Part shown: one piece after another, positions 14,957-17,422 of the stretch
Position numbering within the stretch: the first letter of the stretch is position 1
Layout: every line of letters begins with the position of its first letter
Sequence record: PP968062.1
DNA length: 64,000 nt
Reading direction: 5' to 3' (one strand)
Program-made: the position numbers and the translations under genes
Notes under the pieces: model-generated
What the model was told of the DNA's origin: nothing
What the model saw: only the letters and a program-made list of their open reading frames with translations
Database searches by the model: none

Positions 14957-15316
14957 ATGACTACATTCATGCCTAGTCACGCAGAAGCTGATATTGATGT
15001 TGCTTCAAGAAACAAAATGCTGTCTGAACTGCTTATAGAAGAGTTCCCTAATACCGAAGGAATGTCCACCGCAGCAGCTGAAGACTATCTACGTTCTAAG
15101 GTCGTAGATAAATTCAACATTAACCATCCGGAATACACAGCTCACGTTAGTTACGATTGTACAGCTCGTGGCGATTTCATCACAGCTTGGGTAACCCGTA
15201 AGCTCGCCTTAATCAAATTGAAAGTTACATCAGAGGAACCAAAATGTTCGAAAACGCAGAATTCAAAGATGATGGCCTTGGGGCACTCATTACGGAAATT
15301 TTTGGTCGGAACCTGA
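14957..15316 (+). CDS. Hypothetical protein
   Basis: GAGG RBS; 3' end overlaps next gene by 73 nt so the end is uncertain. Confidence 0.65.
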   Translation: MTTFMPSHAEADIDVASRNKMLSELLIEEFPNTEGMSTAAAEDYLRSKVVDKFNINHPEYTAHVSYDCTARGDFITAWVTRKLALIKLKVTSEEPKCSKTQNSKMMALGHSLRKFLVGT

Positions 15317-15459
15317 ACCAGAAGTTCCAAGAATGGTACAGCCCACTGATGGCTGATCCGACTATAGAAAAGGTTCCAGTCTGCCGAGGTGGGCAGGTTG
15401 TTAAAGAACCAGCTAACTTCGTAGCTCTTGTAAAAGAGTGGTTAGCGAATCAAGAATAA
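15244..15459 (+). CDS. Hypothetical protein
   Basis: GAGGA RBS. Confidence 0.7.
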   Translation: MFENAEFKDDGLGALITEIFGRNLNQKFQEWYSPLMADPTIEKVPVCRGGQVVKEPANFVALVKEWLANQE

Positions 15460-15484
15460 GTTTACTGAGAAGTAAACCATATGT

Positions 15485-15553
15485 AAGAGTTAATGTCGGT
15501 GGTATCCCTTAACTTAACGGTCGGATGCGAAAAGTGCATCGGTGTTAACTCTT
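15485..15553 (+). ncRNA. Candidate structured ncRNA C
   Basis: Terminal stem of about 15 bp (AAGAGTTAATGTCGG/TCGGTGTTAACTCTT, with G-U pairs) and inner GATGC/GCATC hairpin; TATG at 15480. Confidence 0.5.
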
Positions 15554-15557
15554 CATT

Positions 15558-15643
15558 GGGAGCATAGGCGAATTGGTATAGCCAGCTGGTTTAGGTCCAG
15601 CCGTCGTAAGACACTGTGGGTTCGAGTCCCTCTGCTCCTACCA
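15558..15643 (+). tRNA. tRNA-Leu(UAG)
   Basis: GCTGG-TTTAGGT-CCAGC, long variable arm, CCA end. Confidence 0.95.
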
Positions 15644-15685
15644 TTTACTAGATTCTTGTGTAATACTATACGAGAATATTCAATG

Positions 15686-15845
15686 ACTCTGCATGTTCTC
15701 CGGGTATATCCCATAATTGCTATTCTACTCCTCCCTTAAAAGGATAGCATTTAAAGGTTGCGATGACTAATCGTAATGCAGGGTGATTAATAGTGCCGAC
15801 TATAGCGAGGGTCGGGTCTACACTTAACTGGTGGATTCCAGTACT
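15686..15845 (+). ncRNA. Candidate structured ncRNA D
   Basis: GTAATACTATACG motif upstream; CTGCAT/ATGCAG encloses three hairpins, followed by CCGAC/GTCGG and ACTGG/CCAGT. Confidence 0.45.
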
Positions 15846-15858
15846 CAATTCAAATTCA

Positions 15859-15887
15859 GCCGTTATAGCTCAGCAGGTAGAGCAACT
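15859..15887 (+). pseudogene. 5' fragment of a canonical tRNA-Thr(UGU)
   Basis: GCCGTTATAGCTCAGCAGGTAGAGCAACT = acceptor 5' strand, D arm and start of anticodon stem (thrU-like); stops 3 nt before the HNH start codon. Confidence 0.8.
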
Positions 15888-15890
15888 AAA

Positions 15891-16298
15891 ATGAGAATAG
15901 ATCTTGATTTTCCGTTTAACCAAGATTGGACTCATGGATATCTTAACAGTCAAACAACAGGTCGTCGGATTGTACATCTCCATGATGGTTCAGGCAAAAC
16001 GAAGACAGTTAGTTATGCAAGATATCTAGTCTCTGTGGAGCTAGAACGTCATCTTGAGAAAGATGAAGAAGTGGATCACGTTGACGATAATTTCGAAAAC
16101 GATAAACTACTTAATCTCCAAATTTTAACACCCCGGCAGAACAGAGCAAAGCAAGGTCCTCTAAATAGAGTAGACGTTGTACATGGTTCTTTAACAGCGT
16201 ACCGTTATTGTAAATGTGATATTTGCAAACTCGGTAAAAGTCTGTGGTCTAAGGGTGACAAAATTGGATACGAAAAAAATCTGGCCAACGTAGCATAG
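15891..16298 (+). CDS. HNH homing endonuclease
   Basis: SYARYL...EEVDHVDDNFENDKLLNLQILTPRQN HNH motif; C-terminal HG...Y..CKCDIC module. Confidence 0.9.
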   Translation: MRIDLDFPFNQDWTHGYLNSQTTGRRIVHLHDGSGKTKTVSYARYLVSVELERHLEKDEEVDHVDDNFENDKLLNLQILTPRQNRAKQGPLNRVDVVHGSLTAYRYCKCDICKLGKSLWSKGDKIGYEKNLANVA

Positions 16299-16370
16299 CG
16301 GTCGACTGCAATGGATTTGTAATCCATCGACTAACGTCCATCGTGAGTTCGAATCTCACCGTTGGCTCCA
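16284..16370 (+). tRNA. tRNA-Thr(UGU) with long variable arm
   Basis: GCCAACG/CGTTGGC acceptor, ATGGA-TTTGTAA-TCCAT, extended variable region, GTTCGAATC, U73-CCA. Confidence 0.88.
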
Positions 16371-16376
16371 GTAATA

Positions 16377-16464
16377 CCCAGTGTGGCAGAGTGGTTTAAT
16401 GCACCAGCGAAAAGCTGGCGACAAGTCCTACGAGTCCATAGGTTCGAATCCTATCACTGGCCCA
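16377..16464 (+). pseudogene. Degenerate tRNA-Ser-like gene
   Basis: Ser-type D arm and variable arm, TTCGAAT loop, but a 5-nt anticodon loop (CCAGC-GAAAA-GCTGG) and a 6-bp acceptor stem. Confidence 0.75.
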
Positions 16465-16465
16465 G

Positions 16466-16601
16466 TTTTTGAAATTAGTTGTAAGATGGTAAGGTACAGC
16501 CCGAATCACATTAAAGGAGCCGCCCGGTGATTCATGATGGGTGCATGGGTACAAGTCGAGTGATAAAACGAGTCGCCTTTCACTCCTGCTAATTTCAAAA
16601 A
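16466..16601 (+). ncRNA. Candidate structured ncRNA E
   Basis: Perfect 13-bp terminal inverted repeat TTTTTGAAATTAG/CTAATTTCAAAAA; inner GAATCAC/GTGATTC and GAGTGA/TCACTC. Confidence 0.55.
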
Positions 16602-16609
16602 GCTATTCA

Positions 16610-16687
16610 GGTTCCATAGTCGAGTTGGTTAAGACGCTTGCCTGTCACGCAAGAGATCGTCGGGTTCGAGTCCCACTGGAATCGCCA
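16610..16687 (+). tRNA. tRNA-Asp(GUC)
   Basis: CTTGC-CTGTCAC-GCAAG, G73-CCA; one extra C bulged in the T stem. Confidence 0.94.
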
Positions 16688-16921
16688 TTCGAAAAGACAA
16701 GTCTATAAAACATTAAATAGACTTAGGTCTATTCCAATTGGAGGAATAGTCTCCAGAGGAACTAAACCTCTCGCCTATCCCTCCTCCTAAATGTGCTCTG
16801 GCAAATGTACTATATAGGTAATAGCTAGCTAAAAGAGTGAGCACAGATACCGTTGTAAAGGTAGCCGAAAGGCTACCTTTATTCCGTCAACTACAAATGT
16901 AATTTACTCAAGGGCTTCACT

Positions 16922-17422
16922 ATGAATGACAATATCGTTAACGCACACATTAACTACATCAATATGTTAATCGAGGATTCTCGTCAGATTAATGCAATCG
17001 CAGTTAATCGTGGACTACTTCGTATTAAACAAGATGCAGTAATGATCCGTGAGCATCAAACCGTAGGATTCCACACGGGTCCTTTGTTGAACCCTGATCA
17101 ATTCATTATTGATTGGTACGTAGCTAATGCAGACTCAACATTGGTGATTCCTTATAGTTCCGAAGATGGAGCTAAAATCACTTTGGAAGTAGCACGACGT
17201 ATGCCAGAAGTAAACCCGCAAAGGAACTTCGGTCATATCCGTTCGCTCTCGGTTCGACCTGCCGACACTATCGAGTTCTCTAGTAAACAAGAACACATCA
17301 AATACGTGATCTTGCAGAATGCTAGCAACGTGTTTACTTATGGTACCATCAAGAAGAAATCATTTTACAATTGGGTTGCTAAATGGTTTGCTAAAGATGT
17401 TTATGTAATTCTCGTTAACTAA
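16922..17422 (+). CDS. Hypothetical protein
   Basis: 166 aa ORF after terminator 16857-16880. Confidence 0.72.
   Translation: MNDNIVNAHINYINMLIEDSRQINAIAVNRGLLRIKQDAVMIREHQTVGFHTGPLLNPDQFIIDWYVANADSTLVIPYSSEDGAKITLEVARRMPEVNPQRNFGHIRSLSVRPADTIEFSSKQEHIKYVILQNASNVFTYGTIKKKSFYNWVAKWFAKDVYVILVN

Follow-up and report, generated by a model that had tools for sequence, protein, structure and literature searches.

A probable homing cassette of an I-HmuI-like HNH nuclease gene and a long-variable-arm tRNA(UGU) gene at the site of tRNA-Thr(UGU) in the jumbo Pseudomonas phage HPP-Temi

The jumbo phage HPP-Temi of Pseudomonas has, in its tRNA cluster, a free-standing HNH endonuclease gene of the I-HmuI / HNH_3 type, placed between the 5′ stub of a resident tRNA-Thr(UGU) gene and a tRNA gene with the same UGU anticodon and a long variable arm. 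That this locus is a real SegB-like homing cassette is well supported, and homing is the probable route by which the nuclease gene and the long-arm tRNA gene arrived jointly in the tRNA cluster of this phage lineage. Comparison with other phages brought out the polymorphism at the locus, its breakpoints, a minimal form of the cassette, the apparent intactness of the HNH gene, signs of selection on the substitute tRNA, and an association of the HNH family with tRNA genes. Homing endonucleases are known from phage tRNA clusters, SegB being the studied case, and the effects of such cassettes on the tRNA genes themselves have hardly been described. In HPP-Temi, the nuclease gene apparently destroyed a tRNA gene and made up for the loss with a tRNA that has the same anticodon but another structure. 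"The window" refers throughout to the whole stretch of DNA that was analysed, 64,000 nt (64 kb) of sequence record PP968062.1.

Organization of the locus

All features described here lie on the plus strand. The stub of the class-I tRNA-Thr(UGU) gene (GCCGTTATAGCTCAGCAGGTAGAGCAACT, 29 nt, positions 15859–15887) comprises the acceptor 5′ strand, the D arm and the first 3 nt of the anticodon stem, with the break after tRNA position 29, and it holds the sole orphan canonical D-arm motif of the window. When cut at 15888, it gave a weak, 3′-truncated match to positions 1–29 of the Rfam tRNA model (17 bits, E 0.16). The decisive evidence for its origin, as judged from sequence comparison, is not this match but its identity to the 5′ ends of the intact tRNA-Thr genes of sister phages: the stub equals nt 1–29 of tRNA-Thr(UGU) in PA1C, BRkr and phiLBG22, and the upstream flank is likewise the same. 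This left flank (15834–15858, GATTCCAGTACTCAATTCAAATT..), in which homology to PA1C and BRkr resumes after a Temi-specific segment of ~146 nt, is common to the sister phages; in L001 and L005 it immediately precedes the intact tRNA-Thr. Flank and stub together (57 nt) had 94.7% identity by blastn. HPP-Temi has lost the final 47 nt of the old tRNA-Thr gene, and two 19–22-nt probes for the missing 3′ half gave no match in the 64-kb window with up to 3 mismatches. The initial annotation, made from the sequence of the window, had described a 29-nt stub that ends at the anticodon stem and has no 3′ half nearby, and both observations were borne out.

A 3-nt linker ('aaa', 15888–15890), missing in the relative contig X4, separates the stub from the HNH start codon. 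The HNH gene (15891–16298; ATG at 15891, TAG at 16296–16298) encodes 135 aa, and its final 15 nt lie inside the gene of the substitute tRNA(UGU) (16284–16370; 87 nt, with an encoded CCA), which was detected by both ARAGORN and Rfam. The distance from stub to ORF and the overlap with a complete UGU tRNA were therefore as first described. A longer frame that starts at GTG-15831 and runs through the stub was rejected as the HNH gene, because all homologs begin at the equivalent M-K/R-I-x-L. The proposal that the AGGT of the D-loop serves as a ribosome binding site fared less well: this motif ends 12 nt before the ATG, only GAG stands at a usable distance, several HNH homologs have an AGGAG of their own between stub and ORF, and the spacer itself is absent from X4. 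A promoter and terminator scan of 15300–17000 gave nothing above chance and no terminator, which lends weak support to co-transcription of the HNH gene with the tRNAs. Since the last 15 nt of the ORF are within the tRNA, RNase P processing of the substitute would strip the HNH stop codon, and this may hold nuclease expression low. The GC content of the HNH gene is 39%, compared to 46% for the window.

Three further elements follow downstream. A degenerate, Ser-like class-II tRNA (16377–16463; Rfam 39.8 bits), annotated as 'tRNA-Phe(AAA)', had 71–76% identity to phage tRNA-Ser(UGA) genes. Its 5-nt or G33 anticodon loop, its C1-C72 mismatch and its missing CCA mark it as a probable pseudogene; its fold was no better than that of shuffled sequence (z −1.0). 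A conserved structured element of 135 nt (16465–16600) matched no Rfam family. Copies with 75–85% identity were found in phage tRNA clusters, in Psa21, D6, Erwinia phage pEa_SNUABM_9 and Vibrio phage 1.210.O, and the consensus fold had compensatory changes in 16 of 33 pairs. The last element, tRNA-Asp(GUC) (16610–16687; ARAGORN and Rfam), is an allele different from that of the sisters. Relative to PA1C, it showed compensatory stem differences inside the gene and near-identity 3′ of it, and the closest allele in the first locus search was that of phage PaBG (89%).

Intact allele and exchange boundaries in sister phages

An alignment with sister phages had been suggested as a way to find an empty allele. 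All six annotated relatives (PA1C, BRkr, phiLBG22, phiHQ, PS119XW and HHBS36_1) have an intact tRNA-Thr(UGU) of 75–78 nt at the same position. The stub, the HPP-Temi HNH gene and the long-arm tRNA were absent from all six, so relatives without the HNH gene that already carry both the fragment and the long-arm tRNA, the situation named as contrary to the initial interpretation, were not among them. In a search of 50,697 phage records, a near-identical copy of the long-arm tRNA was found in HPP-Temi alone. A protein search with the HNH gave only homologs with <60% identity, in other phages, and no listed sister among them. The locus thus has the presence/absence polymorphism of a free-standing homing endonuclease gene, with flanks 95–98% identical and an unrelated interior, and the nuclease gene stands at an edge of the exchanged sequence.

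The right boundary of the replaced segment lies near the 3′ end of tRNA-Asp (~16680), and beyond it the identity to PA1C is ~97%. BRkr and phiLBG22 carry a different HNH_3 gene at the same locus and have lost tRNA-Asp, which marks the locus as a hotspot. HPP-Temi represents a species of its own, with mosaicism relative to PA1C across its entire tRNA region: it lacks a Kelch-repeat CDS, has the ~146 nt in addition and carries another tRNA-Asp allele. Because of this mosaicism, the order of events cannot be set, and ordinary recombination between tRNA repeats could be the source of part of the picture. The case is a clean one and open to experiment, and both allele types exist in cultured P. aeruginosa phages.

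Cassette variants in diverged relatives

The exact HPP-Temi stretch was found in no sequencing run. Diverged relatives turned up as contigs in four runs, designated X1 to X4. The stub/HNH junction was crossed by the X4 contig and the HNH/tRNA junction by contigs of X1, X3 and X4, at 88–91% identity. Both junctions are thus spanned by independent public contigs and are not an assembly artefact. X4 represents a minimal cassette, in which stub, HNH gene and long-arm tRNA(UGU) are followed directly by the native tRNA-Asp. This form indicates that the unit of transfer is the HNH gene plus the substitute tRNA, and that the pseudo-tRNA and the 135-nt structured element of HPP-Temi, both missing from X4, are extras. 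The X1 form of the cassette also lacks the pseudo-tRNA. The initial view of HNH gene and substitute tRNA as the inserted element holds for this minimal form; the segment in HPP-Temi itself is larger and mosaic, as it includes the pseudo-tRNA, the structured element and the different tRNA-Asp allele.

In X3, the HNH gene has a 95-nt internal deletion, a decay of the kind expected late in the life of a homing element. The variable stem of the substitute tRNA, GAC/GUC in HPP-Temi, is AGA/UCU in X1 and X2. This change is fully compensatory and indicates that the substitute is under selection.

No donor with a near-identical cassette was recovered. A near-identity DNA search of phage records returned only HPP-Temi itself, the best protein match among 5.8 billion proteins had 53% identity, there were no relatives of this HNH in IMG/VR, and an exact 23-nt probe for the long-arm tRNA had no match in IMG/VR or the JGI metagenomes.

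The HNH nuclease and its family

The HNH protein matched phrog_14913, 'HNH endonuclease', at E 4e-27. Its score for Pfam HNH_3 (PF13392), 18.7 bits, was below the curated cut-off of 24.8. PF13392 is listed in the precomputed table for 22 of the 23 HNH homologs found, which points to divergence, and not to a different fold, as the reason for the low score. A profile search of PDB sequences matched I-HmuI (1U3E) at E 0.012. The AlphaFold model had pLDDT >90 over residues 1–90, and 1U3E was its top Foldseek match, with a probability of 1.00. The segment EVDHVDDNFENDKLLNLQILTPRQN retains all residues that are invariant in 17 homologs, including D62-H63, N70 and N75, and thereby the catalytic D-H ... 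N ... N motif in a beta-beta-alpha fold, as in HNH_3 / I-HmuI type enzymes. Only HNH families matched the HPP-Temi protein; there was no GIY-YIG match. By sequence and model, the gene looks intact, functional and foreign.

The nearest homologs (36–53% identity) lie mostly in tRNA clusters, adjoining tRNA stubs, and several stand between complementary halves of a split tRNA gene, which marks tRNA genes as their habitat, in agreement with the initial reading. In L011, L012, L019, L022 and phage P19, the insert lies between a 5′ stub and a 3′ remnant whose acceptor strands are complementary. The 15-nt overlap of ORF and tRNA was seen again in L010. L022 and L023 share an identical cassette behind two different tRNA 5′ stubs, with identity ending at the end of the D stem, which we take as a likely sign of cassette mobility. 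Some cassettes, those of L011 and P19, are without any tRNA. In stub searches for the broken tRNA, L009 was Met(CAU)-like and L010 was ambiguous between Met and Lys. The crAss-like phage cr7_1 was considered as the empty allele for L009 and rejected, as the two have only a tRNA 5′ half in common. Only for HPP-Temi is it established that the broken tRNA and its replacement agree in identity, by their UGU anticodon; for the other loci, the broken identity is just roughly assignable.

These loci may be parts of a general system, a reading we offer tentatively. An I-HmuI-like HNH family (phrog_14913) would live specifically on phage tRNA genes and break them in the region of the anticodon stem-loop, with the near-universal D-arm sequence as a portable left homology arm. 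It would often carry a long-variable-arm substitute with a changeable anticodon; versions for Thr, Met and Ile are seen beside the HNH gene, and versions for Lys, Asn and Pro elsewhere. If this is true, such cassettes would drive the turnover of phage tRNA sets, and could spread tRNAs shaped unlike those of the host, for example ones insensitive to tRNA-cleaving defences. A family-wide pattern would also explain the stubs and odd tRNAs that litter phage tRNA clusters, and would offer a mechanism for the rapid exchange of tRNA repertoires between phages.

The substitute tRNA

The substitute tRNA scored 58.2 bits in Rfam, where the gathering score is 29. Its minimum-energy fold is a cloverleaf; the acceptor stem has 7 bp, the D stem 3 bp and the variable arm 15 nt (C-GAC-UAAC-GUC-CAUC), the anticodon loop reads UUUGUAA and position 73 is U. 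It belongs to a family of long-arm phage tRNAs with anticodons for Lys, Asn, Thr, Pro and Met. Across 13 family members, the variable and anticodon stems covary with few broken pairs, as in functional tRNAs. A homolog with the same anticodon arm and a covarying acceptor stem (L033:6556–6640) is the only Thr(UGU) tRNA in 8.6 kb of an unrelated viral contig. The initial claim of a carried substitute tRNA-Thr(UGU) therefore needs qualification: the tRNA is present, and its variable stem is compensated among relatives, but it was not made for the purpose and comes from this pre-existing family. Among 15 long-arm loci in IMG/VR, adjacency to HNH genes was not significant, so the family is not generally tied to HNH genes. 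We found no published description of the family, and no paper on long-arm phage tRNAs with anticodons outside class II.

In E. coli, the determinants for ThrRS are G1-C72, C2-G71, G35 and U36. All four sequence determinants are present in the substitute, and by these E. coli rules it may be charged with threonine. Nevertheless, it is unorthodox for a tRNA-Thr to have a long variable arm. Like other class II synthetases, ThrRS approaches the tRNA from the variable-loop side, so the arm could impair or alter charging. The charging rules of long-arm tRNAs should be of interest to tRNA biologists.

Proposed mechanism and alternative explanations

We propose that, during a mixed infection, the HNH enzyme made a cut or a nick within or close to the anticodon stem-loop of the resident class-I tRNA-Thr(UGU) gene. 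For free-standing homing nucleases, the recognition site need not coincide with the insertion point. Repair, presumably by gene conversion, would then have copied the donor cassette. The left crossover would lie in the 5′ portion of the tRNA-Thr gene, whose D-arm sequence TAGCTCAGCAGGTAGAGC is shared by many tRNA genes, and the right crossover in or after tRNA-Asp. Such an exchange would leave a 29-nt stub before the HNH start codon, and the long-arm tRNA as the one remaining UGU decoder. The HNH enzyme is predicted to cut the intact tRNA-Thr gene, and the long-arm gene would be resistant to it. Old and substitute anticodon arms have only TTGTAATC in common. With the broken target unrecognisable and so little shared by the substitute, a genome bearing the cassette is presumably immune. 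The initial annotation had likewise read the locus as a nuclease that destroys its target tRNA gene and brings a cleavage-resistant replacement. The parts of this interpretation that can be tested by comparison were all as predicted, which supports it at the level of sequence.

Homing is not the only process that could have placed these genes side by side. Ordinary or illegitimate recombination between the D-arm and T-arm repeats of two phages' tRNA genes may have swapped the segment, with the HNH gene as a passenger, and the UGU tRNA kept since genomes without a decoder were selected against. The phage's own tRNA-Asn has the same D-arm 18-mer as the stub, the L022/L023 crossover falls exactly in the D arm and the mosaicism reaches well beyond the cassette, all of which would suit such passive shuffling; moreover, 14% of the Thr codons in long ORFs of the window are ACA, which makes the usefulness of a UGU decoder plausible. 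Yet shuffling leaves unexplained why one HNH family is found regularly beside tRNA stubs or in split tRNA genes across unrelated phages, and why so many homologs have the stub directly against the ORF start. Nuclease genes at recombination boundaries are, in addition, the known signature of homing (PMC10448857). We consider passive shuffling unlikely. An interrupted yet functional gene, whose stub would be joined at the RNA level to a distant 3′ half as in a group I intron or a split tRNA, seems extremely improbable. Both tRNA halves do flank the ORF in an exon-like manner at L011 and in phage P19. In HPP-Temi, however, the ORF fills the interval from the stub to the next tRNA and leaves no room for a ribozyme core, and two Rfam searches gave no match to group I introns or any other ribozyme family. 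The locus was accordingly rejected as a group I intron in a tRNA gene, and the absence of a 3′ exon from the 64 kb refutes this reading for the window.

A different doubt concerns the substitute itself, which may not function as a Thr tRNA. Another synthetase, such as SerRS, could charge it, or it could act as a nuclease-resistant or decoy tRNA against host defences that target tRNAs, and the replacement would then be nominal. Phage tRNAs that neutralise tRNA-cleaving defences are known (PMC10264068, PMC11464382, PMC11555353). Among the tRNAs compared, the closest to the substitute were phage tRNA-Ser genes (70%), with a common 21-nt stretch from the T arm to the start of the acceptor 3′ strand; the Ser-like T arm, the class-II shape and the many anticodons on one family scaffold fit this reading as well. 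E. coli tRNA-Ser, however, has G2-C71 and G73, in place of which the substitute has C2-G71 and U73, and its variable stem is only 3 bp. The full set of ThrRS determinants and the homolog that is the sole Thr(UGU) tRNA of its contig also speak against a non-Thr function, which we regard as improbable. Entry of the HNH gene with its substitute tRNA-Thr(UGU) by homing is the reading that we prefer.

Comparison with known systems

The genome paper of HPP-Temi does not mention the locus, and we found no paper on tRNA stubs beside HNH genes. Among known systems, the closest relatives of the nuclease in structure and sequence are I-HmuI, I-HmuII and I-BasI, with 1U3E as the nearest solved structure; they share the HNH core and the N-terminal beta-sheet DNA-binding part. 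These HNH_3 nicking enzymes are encoded in self-splicing group I introns of the DNA polymerase genes of Bacillus phages, and the host gene is functional after splicing. In contrast, HPP-Temi has no intron, its target gene is destroyed, and a different gene stands in its place. I-Ssp6803I, the homing endonuclease of the group I intron in tRNA-fMet of Synechocystis, resembles the present case, as proposed here, in that it targets a tRNA gene and is inserted around the anticodon loop. It differs in its nuclease fold and in that the self-splicing intron restores the tRNA.

In the intronless homing of T-even phages (SegF, SegG, MobE), the nuclease gene is accompanied by a resistant allele of the target gene beside it (PMC2988022; PMC2790892). 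There, the sensitive allele is cut in nuclease-less genomes, and repair co-converts the nuclease gene and a linked resistant target function, much as proposed for HPP-Temi. Their resistant allele is, however, near-identical to the sensitive one, with few polymorphisms and no remnant, whereas HPP-Temi has a class-II-shaped tRNA and the stub of the old gene.

T4 SegB is a free-standing GIY-YIG homing endonuclease in the T4 tRNA cluster that recognises a T-arm motif of tRNA genes and takes adjacent tRNA genes with it as it spreads (PMC2330249; PMC13096335). Features in common with the locus of HPP-Temi are a free-standing nuclease gene in a phage tRNA cluster, missing from close relatives, and a strong tRNA association across phages; recognition of a conserved tRNA-gene motif and co-spread with neighbouring tRNA genes would be shared as well. 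A truncated target stub abutting the ORF and a same-anticodon substitute tRNA were not found described in the portions available (PMC2330249; PMC13096335). SegB further differs in its GIY-YIG superfamily and T-arm motif, the HPP-Temi nuclease being an HNH enzyme. The resemblance between the two is one of lifestyle, not of homology.

Anatomy of the cassette locus

The 64-kb window opens the 302.7-kb genome of Pseudomonas phage HPP-Temi, a jumbo phage of the genus Pawinskivirus, and window coordinates are those of its record, PP968062.1. Its genome paper gives seven tRNA genes and leaves the cassette locus undiscussed (PMC11591403). All seven were placed inside the window by ARAGORN.

The locus opens with a 5' tRNA stub (15859-15887, GCCGTTATAGCTCAGCAGGTAGAGCAACT), which consists of the acceptor 5' strand, U8-A9, a complete D arm, A26 and three anticodon-stem bases. 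Rfam, run on the stretch cut at 15888, gave a 3'-truncated tRNA match (model positions 1-29, 17 bits, E 0.16). In a motif scan of the 64 kb, the stub carried the sole orphan canonical D arm, identical to that of the HPP-Temi tRNA-Asn. A linker, 'aaa', separates the stub from an HNH ORF of 135 aa (ATG 15891 to TAG 16298). The ORF end has 15 nt in common with an 87-nt tRNA with anticodon UGU (16284-16370), detected by ARAGORN and Rfam. The stub, ORF and overlapping tRNA thus read exactly as in the initial annotation, which had also seen no 3' half of the old tRNA; two probes for this missing part, with up to three mismatches allowed, matched nowhere in the 64-kb window.

Two other frames run through the stub, the annotated 33-aa CDS HSP1_CDS0025 (15793-15894) and a GTG-started 155-aa frame (15831-16298). 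Both are probably spurious, since homolog alignment sets the HNH start at ATG 15891. The gene annotated as tRNA-Phe(AAA) (16377-16463) has the look of a Ser-type tRNA in decay. Phage tRNA-Ser(UGA) genes match it at 71-76% identity, the anticodon loop is either cut to 5 nt or has G33, positions 1/72 are C/C, and CCA is absent.

A structured element of ~135 nt lies at 16465-16600. Further copies were found at four loci (L003, ~2528-2663; L004, 2501-2636; L024, 1501-1608; L025, 1201-1289). It directly follows a tRNA in the tRNA clusters of the Pseudomonas jumbo phages HPP-Temi, Psa21 and D6 and of an Erwinia jumbo phage, and it lies just upstream of tRNA-Pro in a 48-kb Vibrio phage. The copies share 75-85% identity, with compensatory changes at 16 of 33 predicted pairs, and no Rfam family matched. 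The element is not at this locus in the Pawinskivirus sisters, nor in the relative from sequencing run X4.

The intact allele in sister phages

A locus search retrieved phage PA1C. Its tRNA-Thr(UGU), complete at 76 nt and preceded by the same 25-nt flank, starts with GCCGTTATAGCTCAGCAGGTAGAGCAACT and continues with GACTTGTAATCAGTAGGTC; tRNA-Asp starts 12 nt after it. HPP-Temi breaks off after tRNA position 29, within the 5' strand of the anticodon stem. Five more phages, BRkr, phiLBG22, phiHQ, PS119XW and HHBS36_1, came from a second search, all with an intact tRNA-Thr(UGU) at the equivalent place (sequence inspected in four). The empty allele predicted by the initial annotation was thereby found in all six sisters. 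Relatives lacking the HNH but already having both the fragment and the long-arm tRNA would have spoken against that annotation; stub, HPP-Temi HNH and long-arm tRNA were each missing from every sister phage.

Between HPP-Temi and PA1C, tRNA-Asp differs by many changes, several of them compensatory, and ~97% identity resumes at its 3' end. The replaced HPP-Temi segment therefore extends from 15888 to ~16680. A near-identical copy of the long-arm tRNA outside HPP-Temi was not present among 50,697 phage records, and protein searches with the HNH yielded only homologs below 60% identity in other phages. No near-identical donor of the cassette was found.

In BRkr and phiLBG22, a different HNH_3 gene (187 aa, phrog_15471, Pfam HNH_3 E 6.5e-11; L005:2705-3268 in BRkr, same place in phiLBG22) directly follows the intact tRNA-Thr. 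It replaced tRNA-Asp and ~60 nt downstream, leaving neither stub nor substitute. The genus therefore has three locus states: Thr and Asp; Thr and another HNH, with Asp lost; and stub, HNH, long-arm tRNA and Asp. On these comparisons, the locus is a hotspot.

HPP-Temi is a separate species, and its tRNA region departs from that of PA1C in several further ways. The five sisters that were fetched have a 1569-nt CDS between tRNA-Leu(UAG) and the tRNA-Thr position (L001:1391-2959 in PA1C). The PA1C copy, annotated as 'virion structural protein', contains Kelch repeats. No homolog of this CDS was found anywhere in the 64-kb window. At its place, HPP-Temi has ~146 nt (15688-15833, within 15644-15858) that are missing from PA1C and present in X4.

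Variants in diverged relatives

The exact HPP-Temi sequence was in no public run, and diverged relatives were detected in four (X1-X4). A 2349-nt contig from X4 matched 15640-16046 at ~91% identity, across the stub/HNH junction and without the 3-nt 'aaa'. A diverged 186-nt stretch of equal length follows, then a match to 16233-16371 and a direct jump to 16605, with the tRNA-Asp 3' end and downstream sequence being of the PS119XW type. This genome has just the stub, HNH and long-arm tRNA(UGU) ahead of its native tRNA-Asp. An X1 contig was 88% identical over the long-arm tRNA and the 3' end of the HNH, skipped 16371-16465 and then matched at 99%. The pseudo-tRNA at 16377-16463 is missing in both X1 and X4. 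The mobile unit is therefore the HNH plus tRNA(UGU), to which pseudo-tRNA and 135-nt element were added separately. An X3 contig has a 95-nt deletion within the HNH ORF; the nuclease gene is thus decaying in one or more copies, a stage expected of a homing element over its life cycle. An assembly artefact is excluded by these contigs, which are independent.

The HNH nuclease and its family

The HNH ORF matched phrog_14913 'HNH endonuclease' (E 4e-27), and Pfam HNH_3 only below threshold. Its best homologs among 5.8 billion proteins were 36-53% identical, nearly all with HNH_3. All 23 invariant positions of a 17-sequence alignment are kept in HPP-Temi, including D62-H63, N70, D71, N75 and two C-terminal cysteines. 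Searched against PDB sequences, the family profile found I-HmuI (1U3E, E 0.012). The AlphaFold model (pLDDT >90 for residues 1-90, low in the C-terminal 45) had the same structure as its top Foldseek match (probability 1.00, E 8e-3). The GC content of the ORF, 39% versus 46% for the window, fits a foreign origin.

We examined 19 genomic contexts of HNH homologs, of which the most clear-cut are given here. At the locus of the nearest homolog (L009, 53% identity), a tRNA stub of 32 nt is continuous with a complete tRNA-Ile(UAU), followed by the HNH. L010 (48%) has a stub, HNH and a tRNA(CAU) that shares exactly 15 nt with the end of the ORF, like the tRNA of HPP-Temi. In L011 (45%) a 5' stub and a 3' remnant with pairing acceptor strands flank the ORF, and in L012 (43%) stub, HNH and tRNA(CAU) precede a 3' remnant pairing with the stub. 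L019 (42%) has a stub, a 93-nt long-arm tRNA(UAU), the HNH and a matching 3' remnant. L022 and L023 (45%) share identical cassettes (HNH plus 88-nt long-arm tRNA(CAU)) behind two different stubs. The boundary of their identity is at the D stem end, and the shared 3' remnant pairs with the L022 stub only. This is direct evidence for movement of a cassette to another tRNA context via a D-arm crossover.

Among annotated phages, HNH homologs also adjoin tRNA genes or tRNA-like pieces in Serratia phage Totoro, RaK2, CBB, Vibrio phage 10AMN and Acinetobacter phage Bestia, and Pseudomonas phage TC6 has a homolog with a 5' stub and a 3' remnant. In Kuravirus phages the annotated HNH start codon lies within a D loop. 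In Aeromonas phage P19 (L042, OM339718.1, ~1440-2040) a 504-nt HNH ORF splits a tRNA-Lys(CUU)-like gene in the anticodon loop, similar to L011. The halves have fully complementary acceptor and anticodon stems and an abnormal T loop (ATCATGC), and the space is too small for a group I core. Breakpoints across the family range from about position 20 to position 38, a spread that fits variable conversion tracts and not precise intron-like insertion. The broken tRNA can be assigned no more closely than Met(CAU)-like in L009 and Met or Lys in L010; at the sequence level, HPP-Temi alone provides an established case of a broken tRNA replaced by one of matching identity.

In an Elizabethkingia genome contig (L020, 1501-2889), an HNH homolog ends in T-arm-like sequence (CAGGTTCGAGTCCTG), and the gene directly after it encodes a Pfam RNA_ligase domain. 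There were no tRNA calls in the vicinity.

The substitute long-arm tRNA

The substitute adopts a cloverleaf fold. Its acceptor stem is a perfect 7 bp and its D stem 3 bp; U8 and G18-G19 are in place, the anticodon loop reads UUUGUAA, the variable arm is 15 nt long (C-GAC-UAAC-GUC-CAUC), and the tRNA has a canonical T arm, U73 and encoded CCA. In X1 and X2 the variable arm is C-AGA-GAAA-UCU-CAUC, with all three stem pairs altered and all three preserved. A pattern built from the variable and T arms matched 15 viral contigs in IMG/VR. The genes, of 85-88 nt (for example L027:3496-3583 and L032:3500-3587), were called as Lys(UUU), Lys(CUU), Asn(GUU), Pro(UGG), Thr(UGU) and CAU species. Their shape is class-II-like (3-bp D stem, variable arm C-NNN-GAAA-NNN-CATC, T arm GTGRGTTCGAAWCYCAC, often U73), and their anticodons are those of class-I-type amino acids. 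Across 13 members, the variable stem has compensatory changes at its three pairs in three to nine sequences, and no broken pair. The Thr(UGU) gene at L033:6556-6640 is clearly homologous to the HPP-Temi substitute: it shares the D, anticodon and T arms and U73, and its acceptor stem covaries. It is isolated within a 161-kb contig, and no HNH lies in its vicinity. The substitute is therefore no accident, but a member of an existing phage long-arm tRNA family under structural selection.

Mechanism and alternative explanations

Intronless homing is known in T-even phages. There, genomes without the gene of a free-standing nuclease are cut by it at a conserved neighbouring target, and repair copies the nuclease gene along with a linked, uncut version of the target function. 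By analogy, this is the most likely reading of the HPP-Temi cassette. The HNH would cleave the tRNA target in genomes without the HNH gene, and the gene and its linked uncut tRNA would be copied in together. At each new invasion the generic D arm of the stub could serve as left homology arm, which would explain the frequent presence of a stub beside the ORF. Had tRNA repeats simply recombined and carried the HNH along passively, the mosaic would be accounted for but not the family-wide position of the ORF, and we consider this unlikely. A spliced or split tRNA in HPP-Temi was excluded, as the 3' half is missing from the 64-kb window and no ribozyme family of Rfam matched.

Because of the 15-nt overlap, RNase P cutting the substitute at its 5' end would strip the HNH ORF of its stop codon, plausibly a brake on nuclease expression. 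The overlap is kept in L010, not in every family member. The substitute may also not act as tRNA-Thr, which touches the word 'replacement' and not the anatomy. It has G1-C72, C2-G71, G35 and U36, determinants of E. coli ThrRS, and is without G2-C71 and G73, features of tRNA-Ser. ACA makes up 14% of Thr codons in the window's long ORFs and five of seven in the HNH ORF. A broader system of tRNA-gene-specific HNH cassettes with exchangeable long-arm tRNAs is possible, and we propose it tentatively.

Comparison with known systems

Homing endonucleases in phage tRNA clusters are already known. The literature searched held no account of an HNH cassette truncating a tRNA gene while carrying a same-anticodon substitute, of tRNA stubs recurring around this HNH family, or of a phage long-arm tRNA family. 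The nearest studied case is T4 SegB. SegB lies in the T4 tRNA cluster, recognises a T-arm motif of tRNA genes and brings neighbouring tRNA genes into T2L (PMC2330249), and its homologs co-locate significantly with tRNA genes (PMC13096335). The HPP-Temi nuclease differs in superfamily, being an I-HmuI-like HNH. Unlike in the SegB descriptions consulted, a stub of the destroyed target is left ahead of the ORF, and the putative linked 'resistant allele' is a same-anticodon tRNA of another structural class.
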